Below the pieces are notes generated by a model. The model was not told where the DNA came from. It saw only the letters and a program-made list of their open reading frames with translations, and did not search any database. A stretch of 64,000 nucleotides of DNA, from the NCBI GenBank assembly GCA_047495785.1, contig JBLDXI010000043.1, positions 62,001 through 126,000 of the forward strand. Direction: 5' to 3'. Both the position numbers and the translations under genes were made by a program. The stretch is from Lepidodermella squamata (Eukaryota > Animalia > Gastrotricha). This document shows positions 5,780 through 51,492 of this stretch, piece after piece (within the stretch, counting starts at the first letter, position 1; each line of letters begins with the position of its first letter).

Positions 5780-6552
5780 TTATTCCAAAATACAATATTT
5801 CTTGAAAATCTTAAGCACGAAATCATTCCTTTGTTCGACGGCGACTTGGCGAGCAGTTTTACCTTCTTTGTCACGTAGCATCGGATCGGCCCCTTTTGAC
5901 AGGAGAAAACCAACGACCTCAGCTCTGCCATTCCAAGTAGCTAACATGAGAGCTGTATTCTGACACACGGACCTAGCATCAAGATTGATTAATGGCGTTG
6001 AGATCGAGAAGCTAGAGCCAAGGTTGCATAGAATTTTCACGCATTGTGAGTGACCATTATTCGCAGCCATCATTAAAGGACTCATTCCATCCTCATCTTG
6101 CTGATTGACAAATCGTTGTAAGCAACTGATGGCTGTAGTCTTTGAGTCTCTATTTTCCTGCATTTCTTGCTGTTTCTTTCCTAATAACAGTTTCAGGACT
6201 TCATGGTTTCCAAACCAACAAGCGAAATGTAGGCAATTTGCGTTGTCTCGCCATGCTTCATTCGCGATTGTGTCACCGTGTTTTGATGAACTGTAATTAG
6301 CGTTGATCAATAGCAGGCTGGAACCGGCCAACATAATTCGCACCTGTTCGACTAAACCCTTCGCGCAAGCTTCGAAAAAAGCTTTTTCATCCTGAGTTTT
6401 TGCTTGCTTGAACAGATCGGTAGGAGTGTATGGTGGTGGCTAAAGTCAAAAATTATTTCAAGTTTTTTAAATTCCAAGGCGTGACTTACGTTCGAGTCAT
6501 CCTCTCCACGAGAGCTCATGTCACGCCTCAGTTGTTCTTCTGCCAGATTCAT
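5780..6552 (-). CDS. Kinase-less ankyrin-repeat protein 1 with N-terminal PPxY; exons 6552-6490, 6439-5780
   Basis: Ankyrin consensus (MSPLMMAANNGHSQCVKIL, TALMLATWNGRAEVVGFLLSKGAD). 50-nt phase-0 intron; exon 2 begins PPPYTPTD. Confidence 0.9.
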
Positions 6553-7248
6553 TTTAGTGTAACAATTAAATTCAGTTTGTAGTATTTTTCTATCATACAG
6601 TGGTCTTAATTGTTTCTAGAAATGGGCGATCTCTTCAATTACCATGAAGGCGTGAGATTGTAGCCATTGAATGTCGCGTATATCGTAATGAGGGTACATC
6701 TCAGCCGTGAATGACCTATTTTAGAATTTTCATTCAGAATGCTACCCCCTCACTTTTCATGAAAAATTCGCACAAAACACTTTCTCAAAATGAGCATGCA
6801 AATATGCTTTGAGGCGTGCACATTTTGAAAGCATTTGGTAACGATTATCAGCATTGACCAAGTTTTGTAATGCGCATCATTTTAGATATTTATATCTAAT
6901 ATCTATGCCAAAACAATTCGGGAATAACTTCTGCGACAGGATTAACCGCTACCTTAGAAAAAGGGTCACATATAGACCAACATACACCGCAGATATCCAT
7001 AGGGGAATTACACATTTGATCGGTAATAACTCCCTTGAAACTCCGTGTAGAAAGCAACTTTTCATCAAAAATAACCTTCGATTTATTAGAGATTGCATGA
7101 AACAACCTTAAGAAAATGAAGTGATCGTTCAGAAGCGGATAGCATGAAGTAAGCTATGCTGGGATGCAAGTTCTCAGTCCACGGCGAAGCAGAAAAGCAG
7201 GATACTAGATTATGAGTGATTGAAAGGAACTTAAAGAGGCAGGATTTA

Positions 7249-7764
7249 TTATAGAGCAGCGGCAGCAGTGGTGGGCCTCTTGTGGTTGCGAGCCTGGGCG
7301 GGTCCGGAGAAGGAGCCAGACTGCTGTTCACGCGCCTTGGCAGCGGCGGCGGTGGTTGGCCTCTTGTGGTTGCGAGCCTGGGCGGGTCCGGAGAAGGAGC
7401 CAGACTGCTGTTCACGAGCCTTGGCAGCGGCGGCGGTGGTTGGCCTCTTGTGGTTGCGAGCCTGGGCGGGTCCGGAGAAGGAGCCAGACTGCTGTTCACG
7501 AGCCTTGGCAGCGGCGGCGGTGGTGGGCCTCTTGTGGTTGCGAGCCTGGGCGGGTCCGGAGAAGGACTGCTGTTCACGAGCTTCAGCGACTTCCTCGCTG
7601 CTTTCCTTGATCAAATGGGATTCAGATCCGTGATGAGGAGGAGGGTGAGGACCATGCTTGTCCTCAGGATGTTGGCGGGCAGCCGGGCCGGAGCCAGTAC
7701 CCTGAGGGTTAGCCAGAACGACGGCGAAAAAGAGAACAGCGATCAGAGCGATACGGACGAACAT
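7249..7764 (-). CDS. Secreted repetitive precursor protein (signal peptide + 28-aa repeats each containing a KR site)
   Basis: Hydrophobic signal MFVRIALIAVLFFAVVLA, His/Pro-rich spacer, ~4 x REQQSGSFSGPAQARNHKRPTTAAAAKA. TATATAAA ~85 nt upstream; AATAAA just after the stop. Confidence 0.8.
   Translation of the reverse strand: MFVRIALIAVLFFAVVLANPQGTGSGPAARQHPEDKHGPHPPPHHGSESHLIKESSEEVAEAREQQSFSGPAQARNHKRPTTAAAAKAREQQSGSFSGPAQARNHKRPTTAAAAKAREQQSGSFSGPAQARNHKRPTTAAAAKAREQQSGSFSGPAQARNHKRPTTAAAAL
7257..7583. repeat. 84-bp coding tandem repeat, ~4 near-identical units
   Basis: TGTGGTTGCGAGCCTGGGCGGGTCCGGAGAAGG recurs with 84-nt periodicity (7281, 7365, 7449, 7533). Confidence 0.95.
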
Positions 7765-8134
7765 GTTTCAACCGATTATGCTTTGACTTGTTAGTAAATA
7801 AATTTTGCTTTGGATGATTGGTGATTGTCAACCATTTCGACACGGTTTATATACCCACAAAATGTCCACGTCCGTTCAAAAACGAATCACGCTAGTTGAC
7901 TCAGATGTCCCGCCTCCTCTTGACATGGAATTAAACCTGTTTGCTCGCTAGGCAGCTGTAGTGACTAGAGTGCGTCAAAAGATTCATTCATATGCTATTG
8001 ATTGTGGTTTGCTCACACATCCGAGCGGGCGATTTCACGTGGCAACACAACTTTTTGGCAACAGCTAGATTCCAGAAAGTTCCAAGTCCAATTTGTCTTT
8101 GGAATACTGACATACAAACTTGGCGATTTGTCAA

Positions 8135-8857
8135 TCATTCCTTTATTCCAAATTTCTTAAATACTTTCACAACAGCATCTTGCCTGAGTTCATACGCAAC
8201 TTGGCGCGCAGTTTTGCCCTCTTTGTCCCGCAACGTAGCATCAGCGCCTTTAGTCAGCAAAAACTCGACTACGTCCGTCTTGCCATTCCATGCTGCCAGC
8301 ATAAGCGCCGTATTCTTCAGAGGTGACGTCGCATCCAAATCAGCCAATGGCCGCGGATTCTCACCCTTCGCCTTTGCAACTAGAGCAACGAGACCAGCTT
8401 CGAAATCACACAGAATCTCAACGCATTTCATATGGCCGTTGTTAGCCGCTAGCATGAGAGGGCTCATCTCATTTTTGCCATCGCCATCTTGCTGATTGAC
8501 GAATCGCCGCAACCTGTCGATGGCTTCGACTTTCAAAGCGTGATTCTGCTCCAATTCCAGGTTCAATTTTCGGCCTAAGACATATTTCACGATGTCGTGT
8601 TTGCCGAACCAGCAAGCGAAATGTAGGCAATTTGCGTTGTCTCGCCATGCTTCATTCGCGATTGTATCGCCGTGTTTAGAGGCGTCGTAGTAGGTGTTGA
8701 TGAGATGAAGAGCATCGAACGTAAGACCGGCTGTTAGGAATTTAGCTTCTTCAATCAGGCCCTGACCACAGGCTTCGAAAAACACGCGTTCTTGCTCGCT
8801 TGTTGGGATGGGCAGGAACTTCTTTCTAGCTACAGCAGTTTGGTCATAGCTAGGCGG
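8135..8857 (-). CDS. Kinase-less ankyrin-repeat protein 2 (paralog of 5780-6552), main exon; first exon uncertain
   Basis: Shares HGDTIANEAWRDNANCLHFACWFG and LRDKEGKTARQVA with copy 1. The exon starts after a TTGCAG acceptor with PPSY at the homologous position. The nearest ATG (8975, MNLERICGQLNR*) hits a stop. Confidence 0.85.
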   Translation of the reverse strand, partial: PPSYDQTAVARKKFLPIPTSEQERVFFEACGQGLIEEAKFLTAGLTFDALHLINTYYDASKHGDTIANEAWRDNANCLHFACWFGKHDIVKYVLGRKLNLELEQNHALKVEAIDRLRRFVNQQDGDGKNEMSPLMLAANNGHMKCVEILCDFEAGLVALVAKAKGENPRPLADLDATSPLKNTALMLAAWNGKTDVVEFLLTKGADATLRDKEGKTARQVAYELRQDAVVKVFKKFGIKE

Positions 8858-9539
8858 CTGCAAGAGAACAAAGAATTTCAATTAAAGAAGAGTTCAAGAA
8901 TCATTCTTGTAAATGCTTCAGATCGAGGCTATCATCCTATCTATTGAGCTGGCCACAGATCCTTTCCAGATTCATTCCAGAATTAAGGAATGAATCAGAA
9001 TTTATCTGATGAGAAATTTTATTCAAAGTTTAGGGCCATAATGACGCCCCCTGTTGGCTGAATAAGAGTAAGTCGCTTTAACACCTTTGTTGTAGCTTGC
9101 GTAGCTGAGGTCATAATCAGTGATTGCTTTGAGATGATAGATGAAAGCTGAATATAACTTTTCTGCTTGAAACTTATTTTGAAGAATTATGAAGAATTTC
9201 AAATTTTTGAACCTAGCAATGCTAAATGATTACGATGAATAGCGGCGCGTTTACTACGTCTTGCATGTTTTTTCTGAAAGAGACGCATGCACTGGTTGAC
9301 AGGCGACGAATTGCGATCAATAGACAGCTATGTGAATGCTTAGTACCGGCAAGACTGAATTCATGAATAACAGAAAAAAGTTACCAAATTTTTCTAGAAG
9401 AGCAAGATCTCCATTTCGAAGGTCCCATGAACTCAAACAAGTTCCAATTGAACAAATCATTTTTGTAAAATTGGAAAATTGATTTTCTCGTGAATTATCG
9501 GTATTTTATTTTTCAGCAATTTTTCGTGAAATTGGAAAT

Positions 9540-10130
9540 TTATTCCAATATTTTGTATTTTTGAAAGACTCGCAGAACTTCAGATTTTCGCAACCCATTC
9601 GATAGTTGATAAGCCGATCGACCGTCTCGGTCTCGAATCGCAGAATCCGCGCCTTTTCCAAGCAGAAAATCGACCACGGCCGGTCTGCCAAAATTAGCCG
9701 CCCACATTAGCGCTGTCGTTCCGCTTGAGTTAACACAGTCAAGATCCGCATTAAAATCGACCAAAATCTTCAAATGCTCCAGCCGGCTGTGATAAGCAGC
9801 AAACATCAGCGGCGACATAAAATCGAACCGATCGCCATTAAATCTGTCGATAATCGATGATTTCTCGATTTTTCTAAGTAACAATTCAAGCGTGTCGGTT
9901 TTAGGCGGCCAACATGCGAAATGAAGGCATGTCGAGTTGTTCGACCACGGTGACTCAATTATCGAATCCCCATGCGATTTTTTGAGGTACCTAGATTCTA
10001 CCAAATTCCGATCCACGTCACTGAGCAACCGTTCCACTTGACTGGTTTCGCCACGTGCGACGTGTTCAAAAAATTGGCGTTCGATTTCGACTGTGGTTAA
10101 AATTTCGAAATCGCTATCAGAAGGTGGCAT
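9540..10130 (-). CDS. Kinase-less ankyrin-repeat protein 3 (divergent paralog), single exon
   Basis: FFEHVARG, YLKKSHGDSIIESPWSNNSTCLHFACW, MSPLMFAAY, TALMWAANFG; C-terminus VFQKYKILE matches copies 1 and 2. Confidence 0.87.
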   Translation of the reverse strand: MPPSDSDFEILTTVEIERQFFEHVARGETSQVERLLSDVDRNLVESRYLKKSHGDSIIESPWSNNSTCLHFACWPPKTDTLELLLRKIEKSSIIDRFNGDRFDFMSPLMFAAYHSRLEHLKILVDFNADLDCVNSSGTTALMWAANFGRPAVVDFLLGKGADSAIRDRDGRSAYQLSNGLRKSEVLRVFQKYKILE

Positions 10131-20250: not shown

Positions 20251-20515
20251 GCTCGTAAAATTCTGTCCTTTTTAAACATTAATTGGATGAAGTTGAGGAT
20301 TAATTTGAAAAAACGGCGGCCTTCGTCAAATCTTGCAAGTAATGTGACACTAAGAGACCATGAATCACGATTCGGAGGAATAAGGAGCACTGCAGAATAT
20401 AATTTTTATTCCTTTCGTCCCATCAAAAGAACATTAGAACAAGGCATCGACAGGCGAACATTTCCTGAAATTTTATAGATTGAGCTAATCCGCAGCGATT
20501 ATGCATTGTATCCAG

Positions 20516-22509
20516 TCAAGTCGCATTATTAATTATTAACGTTTCGTTAATTGCGAGATAATAGGCAATTCTCCTTCGCTTCAGTCTCACTGCCACGATC
20601 TTTGGTGTCCGCTCTTTCAAGTTTCTTAGGTCAGATCGCGCTCCTAGCTTAACAAGGTATTTAACGATGCGATACTTGTTCCTTTCGACAGCATGATGCA
20701 GCGCCGTGTTGCCCTTGTGGTCGGCATCATCGACGTCAGCCAGCTTGAAGCCTTCCAGTTCGCACAGTAGCTTCACGCATTCCAAGTTGCCGGTAACACA
20801 GGCTGCATGCAGGGCGGTGAAATTCAAGTTGGTTTTCTGGTTAATGAGTTGCTTCAGCTTTTGAATCGCGTCTTCAAACGAATGCCCCTCCTGGGCCATC
20901 TCCAGGTGGACTTTCATCAGGATCAACAACCTCACAGCGTCAAAGTTGCTGAACGCAATACTTAGATGAAGACCCATCTCCCCTTTGTCAATTATCAACT
21001 TGTTGGGATTTTCCGGCAGTGTGCCGTGAATCGACGCGTCATAGCGAGCTTCAAGCAGCTGCAGGGCGATTTGATTTCGTAAACAAAGGTGAAGAGGCAT
21101 TAATTCGCCTAAAACGCAGCAGTGAAAGAACAACTGATAAAAATAGAAATTGCAGATCATCAGTGGGAAATTTAAATCAAAGAGCCAACCTTCTCATGCT
21201 CGGTCCTGAATTTTGTATAGCTTTCAATAGCATCCGCATCCATTGCTGTTTCAGCCTGACAGGAAAATATCAAATTTATGGCTAGTCAGAGTGCAATTAG
21301 ATAACTAATGCTAGGCTTCGAGCAAAGTCTACTCACCGCGAACGCTTTATTGATATCAGAAGCTTGGTTGTTGAGTTCGGCCTCGATGTCTCGAAAATAC
21401 TGTTGCATTATATTCAGAGCCTAGTTTTACAAATGTTTGAAGCGCTTACATTTTCTTCCCGGACTTTTTCATCTGAGATTCTTTTCTTGAGATCAGCCTG
21501 AGGTAGGGGGCCATTAAAAAATCGCAGTGAATAGGCAGCGAATTAACGTACTATCTCACGAATATCCATCATCTGACTGTTCAGCATTCCGTTTTCGCCA
21601 ATTACTTCATCAACAGCCTCGCCGTAGAAAAAGTCATCGCCCATCACCGAAACCATGTCGCTCCTCCCAGTTTGATTTCTCACTAACAATCGATTCACAA
21701 TTAATGATCTTAGGGAAGAATCATTGATTGAATCCAATCGTGGTATAGTCAACTTCCTTGGAACCAAAGCGATTCGGATGTCCGACCATGGCGTCTGAAG
21801 AAGGACCAGTTCGTAGGCGAAAATTCCGAATTTCCAGACGTCAGTTTTGTGATGGATCTTTGAATAGGCAGTGATATTCAATTCCTCTGGAGACAGGTAT
21901 GGCAGGGTTCCTACTGCCGAGTTCGAATCGACCCGGTTATTCCTACAACAAAGAAAAGACAGAATGAGGATTCAATAATTCCGTCAACTCACTCATCGAG
22001 CTGCTTTGAAAGACCGAAATCGGCTATTTTAGCATCTCTCGCTCCAGCTGTTAGTAGAATATTCTGGAAAATTCACGGATTTATACCTATTTGAAAAAAC
22101 TGAAAGAAAGCTCACCTCAGTCTTCAAATCTCGATGTGTTATTCCCACATCGTGGAGGTAGACCAGTGCAAGGCCGATTTGAGTTAACCATCGCTTTATC
22201 TCGCTCAAATCGAAATTCGACCGGGCCTTGGCTTTTTCTTGGATTGCCTCGTACATATTGCCACCTTCACAGAATTCCATGGCGATGTAGCGATGCGACC
22301 CATCTGTAAAATATTGGAAATGGTGGCAATAAGGATATAGAATTTATAGTCATCTTACGGTCCCAGGAGTCGAAAAATCTGACAATATTGGGATGACTGA
22401 GCTTGCGAAGAAAGTTAGGCTCATTCAAACACCGTCCTGCATTGCGCGAAACTAGTTTTATAACAACTGCTTTGGTACTCAATTTTGACTTTGAAGCTGC
22501 ACAGTTCAT
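20516..22509 (-). CDS. Kinase-helical linker-ankyrin gene A1 (NEK-like Ser/Thr kinase fold, multi-exon)
   Basis: AVVIKLVS..LNEPNFLRKLSHPNIVRFFDSWD | MEFCEGG..HRDLKTE | NILL..KIADFGLSK | GTLPYLSPE..KTDVWKFGIFAYEL; three short helical exons; terminal exon LFFHCC...TALHAAC...TALHHAV. Short GT-AG introns. Confidence 0.88.
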
Positions 22510-22805
22510 TTCGCCCCGGACAATCATCACCAAATAAGTCGTTGTGTTCCTTTTCTTTGAATAAAACTGGATAAGAAAAACCTAATAATGAAGCGCCAAG
22601 GAAGGAGTTTTAGTTTAGTTTTATTCGAGGTTAGAATTCTATACACGGAGGCGACAATGGCGTTATTCCAGGCTAGTTTGAGGCTAAAACCGAATTTCTC
22701 AACAGAAATCATCCCGCTTTGACCACCATGGTGACGTAGGATGCCACAAGCTTTATTTACTCGCTCCATGACAGCCTCGTCGCAGGAAACAAGTTTGGAT
22801 ACTGC

Positions 22806-36333: not shown

Positions 36334-37129
36334 CCTGGTTTGTTTAAAAATATCTGAATTTCCTTTTTCCACGTCGAAATATGTGCCAAAAAATTTCGCC
36401 ACGAGCGCTAATTAAAATTTCAACAAGCCCCGCGCTGAAGTTAACGCATTTCATCGTTTTTGTTTTATTTTTTGAGGCGGAGAAAAATCCTTAAATAGCT
36501 GTGAAAAATCCCTCGTATGTTTCACGGTTTTAATCGCAAAAAATCATATTCAATTCCAATAAATTTGTTCTTAACAAGTGAAATTTCCCGAAATTTTTGA
36601 AAAATTCGAAAAATTCTTTGCGTTTTTGCTGTCTTTTATATTTTACGTTTTCGAACCGACTTAACGCCTTACCCATGGCTGCTATAAGGGATTCTGCTTT
36701 TTTTAGCCGCTGGTCTACCGTCGAAAAAATACGATGATTAATTTTGCATTATAATATTGTTATAATGCATGATATCTTGGAAAATGGCCTCGATTATATT
36801 TTTATCATTTTTTTCAGGTTGTCGGCCGATTGTAACAGGACGTTCGAAAATACAATTGATTAACATTCATCTGATTTTCTCTTATCTGGTGGCGCAATAA
36901 AGATATAACTTTTTATTATGTTTTGTTTTTAATTAAACCGCGCGCGCTATTCACCTGAGTAGTTTTTCGCGCGCGCGCGCGCACTCTGCAGGGGCGCCGC
37001 CTATAATAACAGCTGTTGGACTCTCTTGTTCACGCTTTGTGACTTCACGCACGGTTCGGCTCGCAATGTCCGCGGTTTCTTTTCCGTAGTTTGCGCAGTT
37101 TTCTTAAAGGTATATCTATGCGCGCGATC

Positions 37130-37176
37130 TATTTTTGCGCGCCAAATCGCTGATTGGCCCGCCTAACGTATAAGAA
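37130..37176 (+). promoter_or_regulatory. Putative promoter of the transposon ORF2: E2F-like site, CCAAT box, TATA-like box
   Basis: GCGCGCCAAA (37137-46), ATTGG (37153-57) and TATAAGAA (37169-76), 70-110 nt upstream of ATG 37248; motif match only. Confidence 0.45.
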
Positions 37177-37247
37177 GGAGTATGTTGGTAAGTTTAAATC
37201 ATTCTTGCTCTCAGCTCGAATTTATTTCTCTGACATTGCTGATCATA

Positions 37248-38866
37248 ATGAAACATTTTCTCATTTTGTGGACCAAAGATCGCACGCTCAGCATTATGCG
37301 GTCTGGTGACAACATGTTGCGAGGCTTTACAGCTGACCAACTGGTTGTAGGCGGGCGTCTTCGCATCAACTGGCGAGACGCCGGCAACTTGTACGACGCC
37401 GAAATCGCCGCCATCGGCTCCGAGGCCGAAATTCAAGTCGCGCACGACGCCATCCTTCGCATGAACGCACAGCCGCCGACCAAGTCGAAGAAAGCGAAGC
37501 GCTCCGTGGTCATCAGCAGCGACACTGAGGACGACGATGTGCCTCTGCGACCATCTCGTTCTCCGTCTCCATCGCCGTCTCCATCTCCTTCACCTACACC
37601 GTCGAAGTCGGTTCCGGCCGACCTTGTTCGGATGCCGCCTCCGAAGCCCATGCAGCTGGGCCGAAAAGCAGCCACGTCGTCTCAGCAAGTCCGCCAGTCC
37701 ACCAGTCAGCCAGTCCGCCAGCTCTCGAGCGAGCCGCCGCGTCCGCGGTCTCAGCACGCCTCAGCTACGCCGACGTCGTCACCTGCCTCTTTTCGCCAGC
37801 TATTGAGCGAGCCGCTTCAACACGCGTCAACTACGCCGTCGTCGTCGTCGTCTGCACGCCCGCCATCATCATCCACTATCGAAGAGACGCCATCGTCGCG
37901 CCCTGCTTCTACGCCAGCCGACAGCGGGTCGACTTCATCAGATGGCCGCGACTCAAGAGTAGGTCATTTTATTTGTTATTCGGCTTATTTTCTTTCGGTT
38001 TTCGACTGCGAAAAAATCTTTCAAAAATTGAATAATTGCTTTTCCGTAGCTGAATTTTGTTAAAAATTATTGAGCTTTGCTTATTCCAAAATTGAATTTT
38101 AAGGTGTTTTTTTGTTGGAATTCGTTGACTTTTTTAGTCAAATAATTTCAAACATTACGTTTAAAAATAATTGAATTCAAAATCCTCATTCTCAACTGTA
38201 AACCCTTTGCTCATTCTAAAATTTAATGTTTTAAGGTGGTTTTTTCGATGAAATTCTTTGACTTTTTTCTCTGTTATTATAGCTCGAGACACTGATGGTC
38301 GAGCTGCGCCGGTTCCTTCGAGCCCAGCAAGGCGCTGCGAATTCGAACAACAACACCGGGCGCTTCATCTATGGCGATGTGGATCTTGCCATGCTTGGCG
38401 GCGTGCTGCACGGCCACACGAAGTGGGCCATCGAGGCGGCGATAGTAATTTTCGGAGCCGATGCCCTCGTCAGTTCGATAATCGAGCCGAGAAGTACCCG
38501 CAGCCCGCGTCAGCCGATCACCGAGCGTACCCATGGTGACCAGTTGCGTTTGCTTAAGAGTACGTGATTTAATTGATCTAGTTTTTCGTTGCTCAACCAT
38601 CGTTCTAATCATTTTTTTTATCTCATTAACTGTTTCTTTTTCTGTTTTTAGAAGCTCTCTACGGTCTATTCGGGGCCGACAACGCGGCCTTGAAGTGGGC
38701 CCAGGTTCGGGACGCGGTAAACCAATGGGGCAACGACGAGGCCTCCCGGCGTGCTGGCCGCAAAGGCCGTCGCAGCAGTCAGCCGTCAACGTCTGACCTC
38801 GGCGCTCGAATTCGCGACATCGAAGAAGAAGAAGACAAGGAAAACAACGGCAGCAACGGCAACTGA
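37248..38866 (+). CDS. Transposon accessory protein with probable C-terminal BEN domain; exons 37248-37958, 38283-38559, 38652-38866
   Basis: All splices are in frame. N-terminal beta domain (RLRINWRDAGNLYDAEIAAIG), S/P-rich linker, then KWAIEAAIVIFGADALVSSII...LRLLKKALY...LKWAQVRDAVNQW, which resembles BEN helices. Confidence 0.72.
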
Positions 38867-41073
38867 GTTATATATTTTTTGTGTTAATTTGCGCTCAAAG
38901 CATAATTCAGGGTTCTAAATCTGGTTCAAAATTTCATAAAACCGTTTTTAGCTTATTCGTCACATTCGAGCATTGCTAGGGTTTTTTTGGGGCTTAGGAA
39001 TTTCCTCAAATCATAATTTTAGCTTCATCAAATTCGATCCTGTCTGGTGTTTAGGGTGTTCAATAGGTTCTAAAATCGTAATTTTTTCGTAATTTCGATT
39101 CAAATTAGATTGATTTGTTCTCGGTTTGTTTCTAGCTTTGGTGGACGAAAGGGGGTACAAAATTTTTCAAAATCCAATAGTTCGTGGTATTTTTAACTTC
39201 ATCCGATTCCAAATCCTGTCTTGGTTTTTACATCTCACCATTATAGCTGGTGCTGAAAATTCTAGGAGCTAGTTTGCAGTGTTTGCCTAATTATTTTTTA
39301 GTTTTTTCTGGTTTTTAGTTTAAATATGCTTCCAAATATTTTAATATTGATTCGAAAATCATTTGTTCTCAACTCTTCAAATTATATTATTGTGCTGTCT
39401 ACTCGCGCAATAAATGTGTTTGTCTGCCCTGAAAATTTTCTATAATTATGTTATGCCTGTTATCTTGCCTTTTTATATCTATTGCGTAATATGCTTTATA
39501 GCTCTCGGCTTGTTTGTCTGTTATACCTTCTGTCTTGTCCTTTTCTATATGTGTTTTTTAATATGCTTCATATGCTTTTGTACTTCGGTTCCTGCGTGAT
39601 TTTGTATTTACGATATAAAATATTATAGTCGATTTGTCGTCATTTCCTGTGGCAAATAAAAGCGCAGTTGTCAGCTATGAATTCGCTTGTTTCATCGAAC
39701 GGTTTTATTGCAGCAATAAGGTCCCAGTTATAAAGAACAAAGACGTAGATAAAAGCAGCTGAGAAACTCATCCAAGATATTAATTTAGACGGCGAACATA
39801 AGTTAAGACCAACCAAGATCAGCCAAGATCATTGAAGGCGACCTAAGCTAAGATCTTCTAAGATTTTGCAAGATCGTGCAGGAACTTAGCTGATCTTGCT
39901 TGATCATTAAAGATAATTGCTGATCATCGCAGCTGCAGCGAAGAATCTTGCTAAGACCAATTCTCCTGGGGGTTATTCCTACGACAAAGAAAAGACAGAA
40001 TGAGGATTCGGTAATTCCATCAACTCACTCATCGAGCTGCTTTGAAAGGCCGAAATCGGCTATTTTAGCATCTCTCGCTCCAGCTGTTAGTAGAATATTC
40101 TGGAAAATTCACGGATTTATATTTAAAATAAACTAAAAGAAAGAATCACCTCTGTCTTCAAATCTCGATGCGTTATTCCCATATCGTGGAGGTAGACCAG
40201 TGCAAGGCCGATTTGAGTTAACCATCGCTTTATCTCGCTGAAATCGAAATTCGACTGGGTCTTGACTTTTTCTTGGATTGCCTCGTACATATTGCCACAT
40301 TCACAGAATTCAATGGCGATATAGCGATGCAGCTCATCTGTAAAATATTGGAAATGGTGGCTATAAGGATATAGAATTTATAGTCATCTTACGGTCCCAG
40401 GAGTCGAAAAATCTGACAATATTGGGATGACTGAGTTTGCGAAGAAAGTTAGGCTCATTCAAACACCGTCCCGCACTCCGCGAAACTCGTTTTATGACAA
40501 CTGCCTCTGTATTAAGTTTTGGCCCGTACGTTGGACAGTTCATTTCACCTCAGACAATTATCACCGGAAATAAGTTGTTTTGATCCCGTTCTTTGTAAAC
40601 AAAACCGATGATAAGGAAACGTTCTAATAAAGCGATAAGAAAATGAATTACAGTCGAGATTTGAAGTATCTTTGAATGTGAATCTAATGCCAGAGATTAC
40701 GTCATATTATGCCACCTACCACCTACTTTGTCTCTGGTTACAGTGAATCAATCATTTCCAGCTTTGGTTTGGTCTAGGTCTGGAAAATGAATCGATATGA
40801 TTGAAATTTTCGTCGAGCAAGGCTCCAAAACACTTAAGCCCACTTAACACCGATTTCAAGCGAGAAAATGTCTCGCCACTCGTCGGATAATCATCGAACC
40901 ACATAAGTTGAAACTATAAACTGAGTTTGATTCCGGAGCGAAATTGTATGAATTCAACCTGCTTGTTTTCAGATGACTCTCAATTATCGTTAAAATAACA
41001 ATGATCCGAAAACCAAATTCAGTAATATGCATAATTACAGACAATTTTACTGAAGACTTAGTTTTTATAATAT

Positions 41074-43601
41074 TCAACGACGTAGCTGCCTTGGGGCTTG
41101 CGCGAGCAGAGTCACTACGTCAGTTCTGTTATTCATTCGCGCCAAATCTAACGCAGTTTGGTCCGAATTGTTCTTTTTCTCGACTTCAACCGCGCCCGTA
41201 TTCTTGAGCAGCTCGACGATCTCGCGATGGCCAGCTTGCGCTGCTAGCATGAAAGCCGTATTCCCCTCGTTGTCGGGCAAATCGATTGTAACCAACCACT
41301 TTCCATCTAGTTTCAACAGAGCGTTCACGCATTTCAGGTGACCGTTAGTACTGGCTTCGTGTAGCGCTGTTCTTCCCGCCGCGTTTTTCCTATCCGCCAA
41401 GGCTTTGACAGAGAAAAAGCCGTCACGTTCCCGGCTGTTCTCAAATCTGAATTTTGCATCGAGCAATTTCTTGACAACAGCGTGATAACCTTGTCGACAA
41501 CACGCGTGGATGCACGTATCGCCCTCTGACACACGATTCATCTGGCCCATCAACTGCGAGTTCCATTGATAGTCGAGCAGACCTAGGCTTTGCTGTCTTG
41601 CATGCGTATACCATAGAGTAATAGCCACGCCAGAATCAACACCCAGAAGGCAGGCTTCGAAAAATGACTAGGAAATTCGATTTTAGGGGGAAAATTTGGT
41701 CTAAGAATGTAGTCGAACCTTGTACGTTGCTCTCATCCATTCGTCTCGCTGTTTTTCAGCAGCCTTGCGTTTACTTTTTGCTGTCTATTGGAAATACGAC
41801 ATAAGACGCGGGCGGAATTTTTCTAATCCTAATTTACGATATCATCTCTGACCTTTAAATGGTCATAGATCACGTTATACAAAAACATAGCTCTCCTAAT
41901 TTTGCAGCGTTGCGATTTTGAAAATTTTGAAATGCTTACCTCAACCTTTTCTTTCAAGGCATTGATTTCTTCGCTTGAACGCAGATTAAGAGCTTCCAAC
42001 TTCCGCCTTGCTTCTTCAGCTCGAGCAGTTTGGTCTGCCAACTGTGTCCTTAAGGCATCAAGCTGAAAAAACCCCAAAATGCATTATTGAGTTTCAATTA
42101 TAGTATAGCGAATCTACCTCATCACGTTGTCTTCGCATTCGCTGGTGGATGTAGCTGAAGTTAGAAGTCATCGCTTGTATTTCTGGGACATTGAAGTATT
42201 CGCATGCCATAATTTCATTCATCGTGCTACGCTCGCTTTGCTTTGTGACCAGAAGCTTGTTAACAATCATATCGCGCAACTGCGGGTCACTGATTTGCAA
42301 CGGTTGCTGATCGACGCGTCCGGATGAAAGCGGATTGAAGCTTCATAAGATAAGAGTATAGTAAAACTTTTATTGCCGTTGGAAAATGATCTCACTTTTC
42401 TTGGTTTAAGATGCCAGTCAACTCATCGGCGACCACATTTATGCGCCAGGGTAGCTCAAGGGTAGCTATTTCAACAGCGATTATGCCATATGACCAGCAA
42501 TCGACGCGTGGATCTATTCTTGAGCCAGGTGCCAGGCGGAACCTTTCCGGGGCCATGTAACAGTACGTGCCAACCAGCCAGTTTTCGGAGGAACGGCACT
42601 GCGAGCTTATGAAAAATACCATGTCTCATTTATTTTTCCCTCAGATGAAATCATTAAGTTTCGAACATAGAGAACGAACATAGAGAACCATCGTTCTCTA
42701 TGGTTTCGAATATCTAGGTGAGGCTGGTGTTGAGGTGATTCTGTCTACTGTATCGTCAATGGGTCAGCTTTTTTGACATATATTTGACATATATTTTGGA
42801 TCCATGCATGATCTATTGAGTTCTAGATCCTAGATCCACTATTATTTCCGTGTTTTGGACTTTAGAAAGTACCGCTATTCACCGTAACAATGTTAGCCGT
42901 GATCGCCGAAAAATTTTAGGATTCGAAATTGGAATTGAAAAATCCGGTCATTCCCGGTTATTCCGATTATTCCCCCAAAAAAGGTATCAGTTAGTTTTTG
43001 GCTTACGCTTCTCTCAGCTTGGCAAGGCCGAAATCGGCAACTTTCAAGCTGCGTTTGTCGGTTGTGATGAGAATGTTCTCAGGCTTCAAATCGGAATGAG
43101 TGATACCCATGTCGTGGATGTAGGCCATAGCGTAGCCCAGTTCAGCTTGCCAACGCTTTCGTAACGTCGGTTCGAGCTGTTCGTGGTCATTCTCAATGCG
43201 TCTGTTAAGTTCACTCCTCAACTCGCCTCCGCCACAATACTCGAGGTCCATGATCCAGAAGTCGGCATCTATGAAATATTGAATATTGAAGCTTCGAAGT
43301 TTTAAACATACTGTGCCATGTCCTCACCTTGAAAAGCATTGTAAATCCTGACGATATTAGGATGGCTTAACATACGGAGCGACTGTGATTCCCGCAGCAA
43401 AGATTTCTCCAGGGCGGTGAATTCTGCACAGGTAAGTCGCAGCCTCTTGATAGCAACCGGATGCTTCGCCTCAGCCCGGAAAACTCCATCATTCTGACCG
43501 CCACCTATGAATTTCCCCACGAATTCATACTCAATTACATTCCCTGCCTGTCTGTTGGTAATTGGCGAAGGCAAGGGCACATTCTGTTGATCTTGCTCCA
43601 T
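41074..43601 (-). CDS. Kinase-coiled coil-ankyrin gene B2 (duplicate of B1, compact introns)
   Basis: Same exon series as B1 (MEQDQQNVPL..., HSDLKPEN, GTYCYMAPE, coiled-coil exon, ankyrin exon ending AQAPRQLRR). Confidence 0.88.
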
Positions 43602-44479
43602 CTCAGACGAAAAACTGACTGAAAAGCAAACATCACTTTAACCTTTTGTATGCCAGATTATTAGGCATTTCCTAGAAAAAATGATCTTATCATTTGATGC
43701 AACGATAACAAAATGCCGCAATTATTACTGTTAGTATAAAATCTGTATTAATACCACCAACCACAGCTTATCAGTTCTTGAGCATTGTGGACGTCGCCAG
43801 AAAATAATTGGCCAGCCCATACAGAGTTACTCGCAATGAATGATAAAATATCATTTCCTTGGTAAGTTATCTGGAACTTGACCTTATTTCACCTGAAGTG
43901 ATCCAAGATGATCGTGATAATGATCCCAGGAGAAACTTGGATAATATAATAGAAGCTTATTCCATGCATTACTGTGTTGTTGGAAAAATGAGAAATTTAA
44001 GAGGTGGTCACGAACAGGCGTAGAAGAAAGCAGTGAAAAAAGCAATGATTCAGCGTCGTGAAAACGTTTTTCCCGTTATTTTATTAACACTATTGCATTA
44101 CGTGGTCACAAACACACTTTTTTATTAGTAACAGAGGAGATTTTTGGTGGAAACAAAAAAACTAGGCACAAGCGGGAACCCTTGTCGGTTCGGGTCCAAA
44201 ATTTCAGATTTCAGACACGTGGACAACTCTGCCCTGGGCTCTATGCTTTACCACTGCGGGTGATGTTAAAATACGATATCACAAGCCAGGGTTGATAGTA
44301 GAAAGTAAAACAATTAACGAAAAATTCCATTTTTCTTGAGAACAATTCAAGCAGAACTCGACGCTGCTAAGCCACGGAAAGCAAGCGGATTGTTGAAAAA
44401 TGTGTTTGCGCTATGAGCAATGAAGTGACTGTTTGTGCACACCCATTTGCAAACATATTTCAGTATTTATTCACTTAGA

Positions 44480-46539
44480 TTAACTGACGCGGTTTACAAT
44501 ATCGGGTTCATTTTTGGCACCCCTTTGTATCAACAAATCGATCATTTTTGGGATTTTTCCTCTAATAGCCAAAGCCAACGGCGTCAAACCAGCGTTATTT
44601 TTGCCATTCACTTTAGCGCCCTTCAAAACGAGATACTTCGCGATTTCGTATCTGTCAGTGTTGATGGCGTTATTGAGTGCCGTATCGCCCTCATCGTCCC
44701 GCGCATCGAGATCGACGCCTTCGAAGTCACAGAGAAGTTTCACGCATTCGAAACTGCCATTAGAACAGGCGGCTTGAAGGGGAGTATTGCCACTGAAATT
44801 GCCTTTGTTTAAAAGCAGCCTCAACGACGCGTCATCAATTTCGAAGGTTAATTTCATCATCAAAAGTAGTAGCTCGAGCATTCGGTGTTGCTTGAAGGCA
44901 CAGCACACTCTGAAACATGTTGCTCCATCGCTGTCCGAGACTTCGACCAGCGAATATGGCAACGGCCCGTGTACCTCCATTCGATGGACAACGCTCAGCA
45001 ATTTCAGAGCAACATTAGGCTGTAAGCATGCTATTGCAGATAATTCGTCGCCAAGGGCACAGGAAAATAGGAAGGTCTAAATATAAGGAAGTTTTATCTT
45101 TCCTGTCCCCATAACATTGCGATTCACGCCTCACCCTCTCCATTTCAATTCTAGCTACATTTTGTTCAGATTCGAGATTCGTCAACAGCAGATGCTCACT
45201 CTGCGTTGGATTGAAAGGAAAGGTAAGAGAAAAGCCGAATTTATGGCAATGAACTTCTCACTTCAAGTTCCTTCGGAAGATTTTCCACCTCCAAGTCGTG
45301 AAGCTGCTCAGCTTCCATGTGTTGCCTCTGAATCTGAATATTACACAGGAGCCTTTAAAATTGAACGATTTTAACACAGATGTGCCAATTAAACAAAGGC
45401 ACTAAAGAACTAAGATTTACACTTATTCATGGAAAATCACCTCTTCCAGGTGTTGTATCTCTTCTCGCAGTTCGTTTCTCAAACCAGCCTGATTTAACGC
45501 GAACAGTTACAGAAACTAATTTAGGGAAATGAGGCCACTCACCAAAGCCCTGATATCATCCATCTGTTGTCTCAGATAGGGACTGTCATTCAAAACTTCC
45601 TCGAGGATGGATCCAGCGAAATAATTATCGCTCATCGCTGATACCATATCTGACCTGTCTTTTTGCAATCTAACCACAAGCTTGTCGACAATGAGCCGGC
45701 GCAACTGCTCATCCTCAATCTCATTGATGCGCGGAATCGTAAGTTGCTTGCTGTATAAATGCGAACGTATTTTATGTTCAAGTGTTCCGTAAACTGATCC
45801 TTGATCCACCGCCAGCCATGGAATTTCTAAAATAACCAGTTCGTAAGCAATAATGCCAAATTTCCAAACATCAGTTTTAGGATCGTCCAATTTCCCTCTA
45901 ACGACGCCGTGCTCTTCTGGTGAAAAATAACGCGGAGTACCAACTAGGGATTTCGAAGAAGCCACGCTATTTCTAGAAACCTAATTGCTTTGAGAGATTT
46001 TGGAGAATGTTCATCAACGAACCCGCCAGTTTGTTTGGAGAAGCCGAAATCCGCAAGTTTGGCATCGCGATTGTTGTTTTTCAGCAGAATGTTCTACATT
46101 GCCAAGTTGAAAAAACAAAAATAAACACGATTGGGCAAACGAATTACATCAGGCTTCAAATCGCGATGGACGATTTCCAAATCGTGGAGGTAAGCCAGCG
46201 CGAGACCGATCTGCGTGAGCCATCGTTTGATCTGGTCATAACTGAAGGCCGTGCCTTGAAATTTATGGCTCATTATAGCCCGGAACAAATCTCTGCCTTC
46301 GCAAAACTCGAGTGCAATGTATCGATAATTCGGACCTATTAAGCAAACAAAGAGATATTTTTTGCTCCTGCTGGCCTGATATCGAACTACTTACAGTCCC
46401 AGGAGTCGATGAAGGCGACTATGTTCGGGTGGCTCAGCATTCGAAGCAGATTCGGCTCGTTGAGTATTCGCTGCGATGAGTTGTTGGTCGCTCGAAGTGA
46501 CACTCGTTTTATTACGACCTCCTGCGTAAGGCTATCCAT
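44480..46539 (-). CDS. Kinase-ankyrin gene C1 (A-related kinase, distinct ankyrin module)
   Basis: EVVIKRVS..LNEPNLLRMLSHPNIVAFIDSWD | HRDLKPD | ADFGFSK | GTPRYFSPE..KTDVWKFGIIAYEL; short linker exons; ankyrin exon (GNTPLQAAC, GDTALNNAI, GLTPLALAIRG). Start codon uncertain. Confidence 0.82.
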
Positions 46540-47474
46540 GTCCAAGATTACTACCAAAGCCGGCTATCTCAAACAATCGATCCTTGATAACTTGTTTAGG
46601 TGCATGCTTGAGAAGCCTAAGGCCATCAAGTTTACAACTGCTCATGCATTATCCCGTGAATGAGCACGAAACATTGTCTTACTTGATATCGTTGTTATTA
46701 GATAAGAAAAAATGAATGAATGAATGCTACATAAAAACTACAACCATAAGGCGAGAGTAAACACAGCTCGAAAAATTGAAGCTCGGCGTTACCACTTTCT
46801 CCGATTTGCTCTCATTTTTGGTTCACAAAAACAATAAGCCATAGCACACTTTTTGGAAACCTGAAAAGCAATGGTCGGATATTTTTGTTTCAATTTTTGA
46901 GAAGGCCTATTTTAGAGATTTGAGCAATAAATACCTATTTCAATGTGTAAAATTGTTTGAAAGTCGCAGTAAATTTGACATGCCGCAGAACGGGGACCAG
47001 GTACCAGAGCTGAAAAACCTGCAGGATTTCCTAATAACCCATCATTTCTAAACCAAGGTTTCTTAGTTTGAATAATGCCAATTGGAACTTGGAATTAGGA
47101 CTAATAGAGACTCTATTAGTCACAAGTTACAGGCCGCGATACTCGATACTCATGGAGAGGCGATATGGGAGCCTGGAATTAGCCGAAAAAAAATTGCATC
47201 GCTATATATTTGCCATATTTTTTATCCCATTGAAGGTATATTTACACAAGGCGAGATTTTTCTCAAGATGATGTGACAAATAAATGAAATATTTCAATAG
47301 CAGGAAATGAAAAACCAAGCCTTGATCGATTCTTTAAGATTCAATCCATATCTAATTCAACCACAAAAAACACAGATAATTTTAAAATATAATGTATACT
47401 CACTGTGTCGCAAAGCAACATAATTATTACTGAATTAGGCAGTCCACATTTTTAATAAATGTTTATCTCTCCAG

Positions 47475-48554: not shown

Positions 48555-49124
48555 CAAGCCAGAATCAACACCCAGTAGGCAGGCCTCGAAGAATGACTGA
48601 ACATGTTTAGGGTTAAAATCTACCTCTTGACGCTGTCTTCGCATTTGCTGGTGTACGTAGTTGAAATTAGCAGTCATCGCCTGTATTTCAAGGACATTGA
48701 AGTATTCACACTTCATTATGTCGTTCATCCTGCTTCGCTGGTATTGATTTTTAACCACAACCTTGTTAACAATCATATCACGCAAATGATCGTCATCGAT
48801 CTGCAACGGCTGCTGGCCGACACGTCCGGACGAGAGTGGATTGAAGCTTTATAAGATAAGTGTAGAACACAAACTCTATTTTCATTAACAATAAAAAATG
48901 TTACTTCTCTCGGTTGATGATCTCGGTTGAAATCAGCGATTACTAGATTTATAGGCCATGGCTGCTCCAGAGTTGCCATTTCAATGGCGATTATGCCTAA
49001 TGGCCAGCAATCGACGCGTGGGTCAATTCTCGAGCCCACTCTATCAGGTGCATCGGCGAACTGCTCCGGAGCCATGTAATAATCGGTTCCCAACAGCCAG
49101 TTATCAGAAGAACGGCACTGTGAT
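48555..49124 (-). pseudogene. Truncated B-type kinase-ankyrin remnant (B3)
   Basis: C-lobe exons (GTDYYMAPE..RVDCWPLG; MQIDDDHLRDMIVNK) are present. The N-lobe and coiled-coil exons are missing, and the ankyrin exon breaks off after SFFEACLLGVDSG at an AT-rich tandem tract (48450-48552). Confidence 0.8.
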
Positions 49125-49424
49125 CTTAATAAAAAATTCTGTTTCAACGTCAACGTTCAACTTCTTTGACTTGGATCACTTCGTAAAATGCGAAAAAACC
49201 CAAAGTTCACATTATATTTTTCTTATATTTCCTAACCCTGACTCTGACTAAACCTGACTATTTAGATACTTGGCCCGAGTCCGTTTAGACGTCTTTCACT
49301 GCAATCTAAACTAAAGCCAAGCGTCAGGAATTAAATATCAATGATCTCAGCTTGTTGGACCTTTCGGAATTCGACTTCGATCAAACTATCCGATAGGTTT
49401 TGAATTGCTATAATTGATCATTTA

Positions 49425-50328
49425 GCCTATCTACTGGCAGTACATTGAAGAAGTTCAATTATTTATTTGATCATATATTTGGGAAGTGTTATCACGTCTG
49501 ACGGCAGGTGTAAGGTGTAAGGCTGGTGTATAAGGACTCGTTAAGAAAAACGCAACATTGGCGCTATGCGGAAATATATTTTTGGCAATCGATCTGTCCC
49601 GACTAAAGAAAAAGTGAAATGCTTAAAGGGGGTTGTGGATGCGACTGAATCATGAATGGCAGCGAAAGTTTGACGTTAACTTCTGAGGATGCTAGGCGGC
49701 TCGGCGTAGGTTATATGCGTCATTTGCGTAAAATATGCGGCGTAACACTTAGGGACAGAGTTCGCAATGGGGTCATTAGAAATATGTGGGGTTAAGAACA
49801 ATTTACATTTAAACTTGCTAGGCAGCAACTTTGCTGGTTAGGGTACGTCGCTCGCATCGACCCCGGAAGACTGGCAAGCCAGATGCGGTACTGGCAACCG
49901 CCAGATAATACTTGGATGATACCTCGAGGGCGACCAAAATTAAGGTGGATTGATTGCATCAAAAAACATCTGAACGAAGTAGGGATTACAAATTTTGAGG
50001 GGGCCGACGCCCTGGCCCAGGATAGAACTACTTGGAGACAAAAATTCATAGTTATTTTGGTGAAATTGGATTAAGGATGAAGGGTGAGTTTATTAAGGTT
50101 GACGATCAGGATAGGTAGCTTGCTACCGGTCCTCCTCCGACGCTCGGTTCGCTTGGCGTGTACAGAATTTACATCACACCCAGCGAATTGAATACACCGG
50201 AGTGCATTTTTTTCCTTCTTATTTTTTCTTTGTCTCTGTACTTTTACTCAATTGTTATTGTTATGTTATTGTTGATCAATTAATGAAGGAAAAAAGATGG
50301 AATGCAGAAAATGCTATGCTATGCTATG
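49425..50328 (+). mobile_element. 5'-truncated, decayed RTE-type non-LTR retrotransposon
   Basis: YLGSVITSDGRC, LRKICGVTLRDRVRN, LCWLGYVAR, PRGRPKLRWIDCI, AQDRTTWR (RTE ORF C-terminus) with stops and frameshifts; (ATGCT)3 possible tail at 50311-50328. Confidence 0.8.
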
Positions 50329-50399
50329 ATCATCTAGGCAGAATTCAGAAATAAGGACTCGTTAAGAATTAAATATAAAAAATTCATAACACAAATTAC

Positions 50400-51492
50400 C
50401 TCCTCTAGCGAATGTAGCGTTTCATTTAGTTCGTTCCTCAGATGATTCTGATAGTTTATAAAAATTGAAGAAAACGATATTGAGCAGAAGTATTTCTTAT
50501 CAAATTTCTAATTTCACGCATCTGTTCTGCGAGATAGGAGCTTTCATCCAACGCGTCATCCACAACAGGGCCCGTGTAGTAGGTATCACTCATGACTGAT
50601 ATCATGTCAGACCTATCCTTCTGCAGACTGACCACAAGTTTCCCGACAATCAACCTGCGCAACTGCTCGTCTTCGATCTCGTCAATGCGCGGAATAGTTA
50701 GTTGCTCGCTGTAGAGGTGCGAACGTATGCGGTGCTCAGGCGTCCCAGAGTTATCCCCAACCGCCAGCCATGGAATTTCTAGAATAAGCAGTTCGTAAGC
50801 AATAATGCCGAACTTCCAGACGTCTGTCCTGGGATCGTCTAGTTTCCCTCTAACGATGCCATGCTCTTCAGGCGAGAAATAGCGCGGGGTCCCAACAAGG
50901 GTATTAGAAGGAACCCCGTTGGTTCTGGAAAAGGAATCCCTTGAATGAATTTCGTTAATGGTCATCAACAAACCCTGTAGTAGGTCTTGAAAAGCCGAAA
51001 TCGGCAATTTTAGTATCGCGACTGTTGTTTTTCAGCGAAATGTTCTAAGTACATTTGGCAAGAAATTAGAACAAAAATAGGATTGGGCAATCAAGTTATT
51101 ACATCCGGCTTCAAATCGCGATGGACGATTTCCAAATCGTGAAGGTAAGCCAGCGCGAGGCCGATCTGCGTGAGCCATCGTTTGATCTGGTCATAACTGA
51201 AACGCGTGCCTTCGATCTTCTGGTCAAATATAGCTCGTAGCAAATCTCCGTCTTCGCATAACTCGAGCGCAATGTATCGATAATTTGGACCTGGCATGAA
51301 GTAAAATTATAGATTCCTGCCGAGCTGAGTCGAGCTACACTTACAGTCCCAAGAGTCGATGAAAGCGACAATGTTCGGGTGGCTCAGCATTCGAAGCAGA
51401 TTTGGCTCGTTGAGTATTCGCTTCGATGAGTTATCAGTCGCTTGGAGTGACACTCTTTTTATTACCACTTTCTGCGTAAAGCGATCTTTCAT
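50400..51492 (-). pseudogene. Kinase gene C2 (paralog of C1) with no downstream ankyrin exon of its own
   Basis: KVVIKRVS..LNEPN..DSWD | ALELCEDG..HRDLKPD | ADFGFSR..GTPRYFSPE..RTDVWKFG | NHLRNELNETLHSLEE, followed by the LINE. It may be a truncated but expressed gene. Confidence 0.7.

Follow-up and report, generated by a model that had tools for sequence, protein, structure and literature searches.

Layout of the ankyrin gene array

We analysed a stretch of 64,000 nucleotides (the window) from the gastrotrich Lepidodermella squamata (GenBank assembly GCA_047495785.1, contig JBLDXI010000043.1, positions 62,001 to 126,000 of the forward strand), which carries an array of ankyrin-repeat (ANK) genes, some of them fused to a protein kinase and others kinase-less. 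On the minus strand between 5780 and 51492, ten related genes or remnants are located within 46 kb, and this reproduced the count of at least ten members or remnants on one strand given in a preliminary description of the same DNA. By tblastn of the exon open reading frames (ORFs) on the window, Pfam and a six-frame scan with a hidden Markov model (HMM) of the module, we found exactly eight homologous ANK modules, all on the minus strand:

6439-5780, minus strand: ANK module of K1
8857-8135, minus strand: ANK module of K2
10130-9540, minus strand: ANK module of K3
21133-20516, minus strand: ANK module of A1
23399-22806, minus strand: ANK module of B1
32199-31567, minus strand: ANK module of A2
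41667-41074, minus strand: ANK module of B2
45076-44480, minus strand: ANK module of C1

The six-frame scan also gave a faint ANK remnant at 19842-20027, and tblastn on the window gave seven kinase units (A1, B1, A2, B2, C1, C2 and fragment D). Each of the eight modules was recognised by Pfam as ANK, and the two kinase exons scanned (B1 and C1) as Pkinase. The members are four apparently intact kinase-ANK fusions (A1, B1, B2, C1), three kinase-less ANK genes (K1, K2, K3) and three decayed copies (A2, C2, D). The window is eukaryotic, with a G+C content of ~42%, and its introns are spliceosomal and mostly 50-80 nt long, with donors of the GTAAGT/GTGAGT type and pyrimidine-rich acceptors ending in AG. 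The array looks like a lineage-specific tandem gene family in a compact animal genome, and a SOCS-box gene and a MAM-domain gene in the window also indicate an animal.

The shared ankyrin module

The eight modules are collinear end to end in the alignment and their length is fixed across members. The AlphaFold 2 (AF2) model of K2 (predicted local distance difference test, pLDDT, 90; predicted template modelling score, pTM, 0.87) has six helix pairs, a long helix at residues 87-104 and an insert helix at residues 109-120. The module as a whole is composed of six helix pairs. Its N-cap is specific to the family (E-x-E-K/R-x-F-F-x-x-C), its second repeat is degenerate (Y-x-x-S-x-H-G), and an additional helix is inserted behind the third repeat. 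The preliminary description had quoted two pairs of non-consensus inserts, together with an FF motif, as diagnostic of the kinase-less genes and the type A fusions. The quoted strings are present (ALHLINTYYDASKHGDTI in K2 and ALQLLEARYDASIHGTL in A1, RKLNLELEQNHALKVEAIDRLRRFVNQ in K2 and KVHLEMTQGGHSFEEAMQRLRSCVNRK in A2, the second insert being the insert helix of the K2 model), but the features are common to all eight modules in varying degree.

As decoys we used 167 ankyrin-rich proteins (338,514 aa) from the profile-search matches. With an HMM built from the first 100 aa of the kinase-fused modules, K2 and K1 scored 33.6 and 32.2 bits in full-length matches, with the best single decoy domain at 24.0 bits, and the reverse HMM, built from the K genes, scored A1 at 32.8 and A2 at 32.3 bits, with the best decoy at 20.8 bits, a reciprocal margin of 9-12 bits over all decoys. 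Among the 338,514 aa of decoys the pattern FF..[CV]..G occurred 7 times and Y..S.HG did not occur. In a tree of the eight modules with 14 decoy ANK segments, the modules formed one clade against the decoys (support 94/96), with subclades K (100/98), A+C (96/93) and B (100/100), whose branching order this tree left unresolved. Collinear alignment, reciprocal HMMs and the single clade all bear out the earlier proposal that kinase-less and kinase-fused ankyrin modules are one group.

The same data bear on the view that K1, K2 and K3 are small ankyrin genes of an ordinary and unrelated kind near a kinase array, with only a generic likeness to it. An identity of 25-35% is usual between ankyrin repeats whatever their origin, the K-HMM scores of C1 (18.6 bits) and B2 (15.8 bits) are no higher than those of decoys, and Foldseek searches against AlphaFold Database (AFDB) clusters and the PDB gave generic ANK and DARPin matches (template modelling score by query ~0.55). 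However, the matches between K and A modules run over the full length, including the non-consensus N-terminal 100 aa, which no ankyrin of the PDB matched (PDB sequence searches with K2 mostly hit its C-terminal consensus repeats, residues 132-238), the shared motifs coincide in position and are rare elsewhere, the eight modules form one clade against the decoys, and all of them lie on one strand in one cluster, so we regard unrelated K genes as quite unlikely.

The K genes had also been allied specifically with type A, and here the tree disagreed: the best tree of the eight modules without decoys grouped K with B and A with C (88/87), and a K+A clade cost 3.56 log-likelihood units (p-value of the approximately unbiased test, p-AU, 0.093), so that K as the sister of type A is not preferred. 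The likeness between K and A is best read as the retention of ancestral features that were partly lost by C1, with its shortened insert, and by B. K and A modules are ~28% identical, and there are 12 invariant columns with no run of adjacent surface positions; read from the alignment, and not by mapping on the model, these columns appear to be framework residues.

In the fusions, the N-cap helix begins in the last residues of the third micro-exon of the linker that joins kinase and ANK, and the junctions (marked here and below by a slash) read EHEK/LFF in type A, EMER/TFLF in type C and TYK/SFF in type B, while the K genes have QDEK-AFF, EQER-VFF and EIER-QFF. A phase-0 intron inside the N-cap helix is present in A, B and C, and there is none in K. 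Judged by their sequences, the K genes represent an old and separate branch of the ANK module, without kinase and with a short 5' exon of their own (or, in K3, a single coding exon).

Three kinase-less genes

5780..6552, minus strand: K1, protein of ~240 aa (sequence reading, Pfam ANK, tblastn)
8135..9114, minus strand: K2, protein of ~250 aa (sequence and cDNA reads of run X1, described below)
9540..10130, minus strand: K3, protein of 196 aa in a single coding exon (sequence, Pfam, X1 cDNA)

Exon 1 of K1 (6552-6490) has 21 codons with its own ATG (MNLAEEQLRRDMSSRGEDDSN) and a GTAAGT donor, and it is followed by a 50-nt intron and by exon 2 (6439-5780), which opens with PPPYTP. K2 has a putative exon 1 (9114-9085, MTSATQATTK), a putative intron of 227 nt (9084-8858) and an exon 2 (8857-8135) that comes after a textbook acceptor (ttgttctcttgcag) and opens with PPSYDQ. 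K3 begins at an ATG at 10130 (MPPSDSDF) and has Asp in place of the PPxY tyrosine (PPSD). The PPxY motif, which the preliminary description assigned to the kinase-less genes, is therefore confirmed for K1 (PPPY) and K2 (PPSY), where it forms the first residues of exon 2, but not for K3, that is in two of the three K genes, with a background of 10 PPxY per 77,513 six-frame residues. In the AF2 model of K2, residues 1-12, the tail with the PPxY, are disordered (pLDDT <50). An accessible PPxY, as in ligands of NEDD4-family WW domains, is present in K1 and K2 (from sequence, and in K2 from the model) and not in K3.

K1 and K2 have a common tract of ~53 nt (6205-6260 and 8600-8655, minus strand, TIANEAWRDNANCLHFAC), which is identical even at synonymous sites, while their synonymous divergence (dS, Nei-Gojobori) is otherwise saturated, and this synonymous-site identity makes gene conversion the probable origin of the tract. 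In a DNA read run (X2), variant contigs with ~40% of the depth and ~6% differences were observed over 5925-6147 of K1, which could be divergent alleles or an unassembled near-copy.

Run X2 is DNA at ~80x throughout, and a second run, X1, was treated as cDNA because its intergenic bins are empty while X2 covers everything; a loose end of X1 at 9535 also matches a SMART cDNA primer. When X1 reads were mapped to the K-gene region, they covered 8362-8943 and 9141-9337 at K2 and 9535-10125 at K3, with a trace only at K1 (depth 1.27 in a single bin). A1 was assessed by sampled sequence words, and since 31% of the sampled words of 20500-22800 were present in X1, it is taken as transcribed; the premise that the copies are transcribed was thus supported for K2, K3 and A1. 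One mate joint at K2 (8859-9203) spans 344 nt and the other six 97-114 nt, and this excess of ~240 nt fits the predicted 227-nt intron between 9085 and 8857. All seven X1 joints (8504-9969) were of the "opposite strands" kind and ~100 nt apart, which suggests that read pairs were stored in head-to-tail order and has no biological meaning.

A further possibility, that some kinase gene upstream uses the K exons as alternative 3' exons, or that they are pseudo-exons from a partial duplication, has in its favour that the ANK exons of K1 and K2 start at splice acceptors, that K1 is nearly without cDNA cover and that a decayed copy of the K1 exon 1 start (ATGAATCTGG...) lies upstream in K2. However, an ATG exon of its own, with a GTAAGT donor, is found 50 nt upstream in K1, and K3 likewise begins with an ATG of its own; cDNA covers the upstream exon region of K2 as well as K3, the K ORFs are open, and one has to go >10 kb upstream, past four other ORFs on both strands, to reach the next kinase. 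We therefore consider this possibility very unlikely, and K1, K2 and K3 are, as far as their sequences tell, truly kinase-less genes.

Kinase-ankyrin fusion genes

20516..22769, minus strand: A1, kinase, coiled-coil linker and ANK (ORF pieces, A1/A2 DNA alignment, X1)
22806..28339, minus strand: B1, kinase, coiled coil and ANK (Pfam, tblastn, comparison with B2)
41074..43630, minus strand: B2, second copy of B1, its introns short and its exons seemingly intact (tblastn, self-blastn)
44480..46640, minus strand: C1, kinase, linker and ANK (sequence, PDB searches)

The kinase exons of A1 extend from ~22581 to 21552 (VVIK, HRDLKTE/NILL, DFG, GTLPYLSPE) after a putative first exon at ~22769, and they are followed by micro-exons at 21497-21450, 21399-21337 and 21255-21190 and by the ANK exon (21133-20516). 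In the A1/A2 DNA alignment the kinase C-lobe exon ends at ...DIREI/GTACGT, and the type A linker is made of three phase-0 micro-exons of 48 nt (ADLKKRISDEKVREEN), 63 nt (YFRDIEAELNNQASDINKAFA) and 66 nt (AETAMDADAIESYTKFRTEHEK), followed by LFFHCC...; the second micro-exon of A2 has 9 extra in-frame bases compared with A1. The introns of this region in A1 (54, 50, 81 and 56 nt) are less conserved than the exons, and most indels are found there.

C1 has kinase exons from ~46640 to 45543 (VVIK, HRDLKPD/NILL, DFG, GTPRYFSPE), with the C-lobe exon ending at ...DDIRAL/GTGAGT, then micro-exons at 45488-45441, 45333-45262 and 45200-45135 that encode the linker (AGLRNELREEIQHLEE, IQRQHMEAEQLHDLEVENLPKELE and SEHLLLTNLESEQNVARIEMER), and an ANK exon (45076-44480) that begins with TFLFSCALG.... 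The N-lobe of B1 (28339-27755; HSDLKPEN, DFG) contains a 51-nt in-frame intron and is followed by the C-lobe (~26366-25841, GTYCYMAPE), a coiled-coil exon (~25833-25702) and the ANK exon (23399-22806); the corresponding parts of B2 are an N-lobe with a 62-nt intron (43630-43006), a C-lobe (42625-42100), a coiled-coil exon (~42083-41960), a last linker exon ending ...KRKAAEKQRDEWMRATYK before SFFEAC, and the ANK exon (41667-41074). A frameshift in the N-lobe of B2 was considered and rejected, because the site is the 62-nt intron, and the B1 "ORF" reads in frame through the homologous 51-nt intron. Two intron insertions in B1, at 23530-25665 (2.1 kb) and 26360-27749 (1.4 kb), have no counterpart in B2; the first has inverted repeats within it and is possibly a non-autonomous element.

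The linker is charged and, by eye, coiled-coil-like, and in types A and C it is encoded by three phase-0 micro-exons. Because this in-frame micro-exon structure is conserved, kinase and ANK were taken as one gene, and we infer the order kinase, charged coiled-coil-like linker, ANK. The stop of B1 and the first in-frame ATG of the possible first exon of A1 are 36 nt apart (22770-22808, minus strand), a spacing not conserved in the second copy (B2/A2); with genes packed so tightly, co-transcription or trans-splicing should be considered.

Duplication, decay and a transposon

Self-blastn showed that the B-A gene pair was duplicated as a block, with five segments:

20586-21936 vs 31652-32996, 78% identity
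21935-22603 vs 39971-40642, 89% identity
22792-23530 vs 41060-41801, 88% identity
25665-26360 vs 41930-42622, 95% identity
27749-28432 vs 43000-43704, 88% identity

The decayed copies and the transposon within one of them are:

31567..40642, minus strand: A2, disrupted duplicate of A1 (self-blastn, junction sequences, alignment)
32997..39970, plus strand: DNA transposon of 6,974 bp within the kinase C-lobe exon of A2 (junction sequences, Pfam)
48617..49153, minus strand: D, isolated B-like kinase C-lobe fragment (tblastn, self-blastn)
50337..51492, minus strand: C2, decayed copy of C1 with 77.5% nucleotide identity, kinase unit 51468-50459 (self-blastn, alignment)

A2 is left as the 5' part of the kinase (40642-39971), the kinase C-lobe (32996-32594) and the ANK exon (32199-31567); upstream of the kinase it differs from A1, and a counterpart of the putative first exon of A1 is not conserved. 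The transposon is bounded by 12-bp terminal inverted repeats (CCCAGGAGAATT) and also has CCAAGATC repeats in subterminal position. Of its three long ORFs, all open, one resembles a tnp2 transposase (Pfam PF02992 and PF06869, each scoring under its gathering threshold), and since the ORFs are open the element looks recently active. C2 has lost the DFG (LKLPISAFQ), its donor after the C-lobe exon is changed from GT to AT, and of its linker a relic of micro-exon 1 is left, while the ANK exon is missing. D shares 75% nucleotide identity with B1/B2 and lacks both N-lobe and ANK exon. As read from the sequence comparisons, the family has been shaped by segmental duplication, by truncation, by insertion of a transposon and probably by gene conversion, and the birth-and-death array proposed earlier is well illustrated by the B-A duplication, the transposon in A2, the decay of C2 and D, and the K1/K2 tract.

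Kinase class and selection

A1, B1, B2 and C1 retain the catalytic Lys (VAIK/VVIK), HRD (HSD in type B, whose kinases are thus non-RD) and DFG, and the glycine-rich loops are atypical (A1: VRGEMNCAA). In PDB searches the HRD exon of C1 matched NEK1 best (47.4 bits, next a CDPK with 38.0), the HRD exon of A1 matched NEK1 (38.2) in a tie with Wee1 (38.0), the C-lobe of C1 matched CTR1 (30.3) and then NEK2 (29.0), and B1 matched PERK, Aurora C and PLK4 with its N-lobe and OSR1 and SPAK with its C-lobe. Against 5.8 billion proteins the B1 N-lobe found generic kinases with <=45% identity, the best-scoring ones at 31-37%. As in NEK kinases, a GTPxYxSPE-type activation segment together with a coiled-coil-like linker is found in C1 (GTPRYFSPE) and A1 (GTLPYLSPE), while type B has GTYCYMAPE instead. 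The kinases had been called NEK-like as a whole; types A and C are weakly so, but type B cannot be classified.

Pairwise Nei-Gojobori estimates of the ratio of nonsynonymous to synonymous divergence (dN/dS) were as follows:

A1/A2, ANK: dN/dS 0.36, dS 0.62
B1/B2, ANK: dN/dS 0.38, dS 0.235
A1/A2, kinase C-lobe: dN/dS 0.17
C1/C2, kinase C-lobe: dN/dS 0.12

None of the pairs A1/A2, B1/B2 and C1/C2 had dN/dS near 1, and the ANK is under weaker constraint than the kinase. With all values below 1, these data indicate purifying selection with turnover of copies and no detectable diversifying selection, and the "rapidly evolving" recognition system of the preliminary description is not supported.

These estimates are relevant to an intracellular immune or stress surveillance system, in which a diversifying ANK recognition module would be wired to phosphorylation in the fusions and to ubiquitination in the PPxY genes, or would act as a decoy. 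Copies turn over in a tandem array, the ANK evolves faster than the kinase (0.36-0.38 vs 0.12-0.17), and the type B kinases are non-RD, a class often tied to pattern-recognition signalling. However, no dN/dS >1 was obtained among the pairs computed, Pfam found no death, TIR, CARD or NACHT domain in the gene pieces scanned, K3 is without PPxY, and K and A are only ~28% identical, so that a shared ligand, and with it a decoy role across subfamilies, would be unlikely. Nothing observed here links the locus to immunity or stress, and we consider such surveillance unlikely as an explanation of the array.

Known systems and outside relatives

The vertebrate proteins RIPK4 and ANKK1 combine a kinase of the RIP family (TKL) with about 10-11 C-terminal ankyrin repeats. 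The fusions resemble them in having an N-terminal Ser/Thr kinase and C-terminal ankyrin repeats, and differ in their six helix pairs, tandem array and kinase-less paralogues; no RIPK chain was among the matches listed in PDB searches of the A1, B1 and C1 kinase pieces. In NF-kB p105/p100 and IkB, one ankyrin module occurs both effector-fused and free, and the free form can regulate or compete; the array lacks a Rel-homology domain, has a kinase as effector and showed no relationship to them in sequence, so the likeness is in logic only. The PPxY of K1 and K2, in a tail that is disordered in the K2 model, recalls the NEDD4 PY adaptors and substrates NDFIP and ARRDC, but the motif is single here and missing from K3, and the known adaptors have other folds. 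A C-terminal SOCS box of the ASB type is absent, as ANK families were all that Pfam recognised in the modules of types K, A, B and C.

The closest system was found in Giardia, where N-terminal NEK-type kinases are combined with ankyrin repeats and coiled coils and have a kinase-less sister, the Protein 21.1 family; both Nek and Protein 21.1 are expanded and turning over, they were suggested to form one family, and the association of Nek with ankyrin was stated by the authors to be unknown in other species (Manning et al. 2011, PMC3218828). Giardia thus shares with the array kinase-ANK fusions plus kinase-less paralogues with the same special repeats. It differs, however, in being a protist with 1-26 repeats (median 8) of the TALM type, in contrast to the fixed six-unit module with unique inserts found here; K1, K2 and K3 have a single TALM each and types A, B and C have none, so that the TALM arrays of Giardia have no equivalent. 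Moreover, the Giardia Neks are mostly catalytically dead, whereas catalytic Lys, HRD/HSD and DFG are kept in A1, B1, B2 and C1. No metazoan NEK-ANK family was described in the papers that our literature searches found, and among these a kinase-ankyrin expansion with kinase-less paralogues was described only for Giardia.

Searches of protein databases with the full K2 exon gave only generic ANK proteins with <=44% identity, the stronger ones at ~30% over about half the query, and the N-terminal 109 aa of K2 gave no candidate. The homologue search used a length window of 0.55-1.75x the query; no close outside relatives were found within it, and full-length fusions (~550 aa) fall outside this window, so their absence is not shown. 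A profile of 97 N-terminal positions against a representative library listed 150 matches, all giant multi-repeat ankyrin proteins with 8-49 matches each on a single canonical repeat; five longer profile matches were examined as possible kin and rejected as generic ANK or STAND proteins. In the ESM Atlas, the K2 N-terminus and the C1 C-lobe matched generic ANK and kinase clusters.

Neighbouring genes

7249-7764, minus strand: secreted-protein gene between K1 and K2, signal peptide MFVRIALIAVLFFAVVLA
12148-13086, minus strand: ORF of 312 aa ending in a SOCS box (Pfam E 7.8e-8), directly upstream of K3
15090-16097, plus strand: single-pass membrane protein with Thr-rich stalk and MAM domain, an ordinary neighbour
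17885-19441, minus strand: intronless ORF of 518 aa with signal peptide (ESM Atlas look-alikes)
61361-62452, plus strand: ORF of 363 aa with C2 domain, an ordinary neighbour

The secreted-protein gene contains 84-nt tandem repeats (7256-7581), over which the DNA depth is 4-5x the usual one, and it has the highest X1 cDNA depth of the stretch (up to 77). The SOCS-box ORF, whose N-terminal part was not recognised by Pfam, was considered as a third output of the ANK module and rejected (module HMM -1.6 bits). Look-alikes of the 518-aa ORF belong to the pectate-lyase superfamily (right-handed beta-helix) and are almost all bacterial or fungal, which makes it a candidate for horizontal acquisition; no contigs encoding it are on record.

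Interpretation

Taken as a whole, the array is likely to be a lineage-specific kinase-ANK family with a separate kinase-less K branch. We hold the anatomy and the evolutionary part of this explanation with good confidence, whereas the functional part is tentative. In the fusions, the kinase would be recruited through the ANK domain to its substrate or to a partner protein, and dimerisation might occur through the linker, by analogy with NEK kinases. The K proteins would be free ANK adaptors, and in K1 and K2 the disordered PPxY tail could recruit a NEDD4-type WW-domain ligase, either for control of protein level or for access to cargo.

Several points weigh against this explanation. NEDD4 binding is suggested by a motif of four residues in two paralogues, that is in two of the three K genes. 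The exon 1 splice junction of K2 was deduced from mate spacing, and no splice junction of a fusion gene was seen in the reads, which were mapped on the K genes, the joining of kinase and ANK relying on the conserved in-frame micro-exons. Given their atypical glycine-rich loops, some of the array kinases may be weak or inactive. The ANK tree is unrooted, so the K genes may have arisen by loss of the kinase from a fusion, or the fusions by capture of a K-like gene. Finally, a closer relative may exist outside the array, the decoys having been picked by summed score.

A wider reading would make the array part of a genome-wide, ankyrin-based innate recognition repertoire, with related, variable ANK modules in kinase, ubiquitin-ligase, NB-ARC and secreted architectures and with the K proteins as PPxY-tagged sensors or guards read by NEDD4-type ligases. 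If true, such a repertoire would parallel, in an animal, the tandem-kinase and integrated-decoy immunity of plants, yet we judge it highly improbable. On present evidence the array is an ordinary birth-and-death gene family and not a demonstrated new system. As an independent, partly NEK-like animal kinase-ANK family with free PY-motif paralogues, it would show that domain shuffling of this kind recurs, and as its paralogues are few (four apparently intact fusions, three free modules, three decayed copies), it is tractable to ask which ligand the ANK module binds and whether the loss of a kinase can create a regulator.

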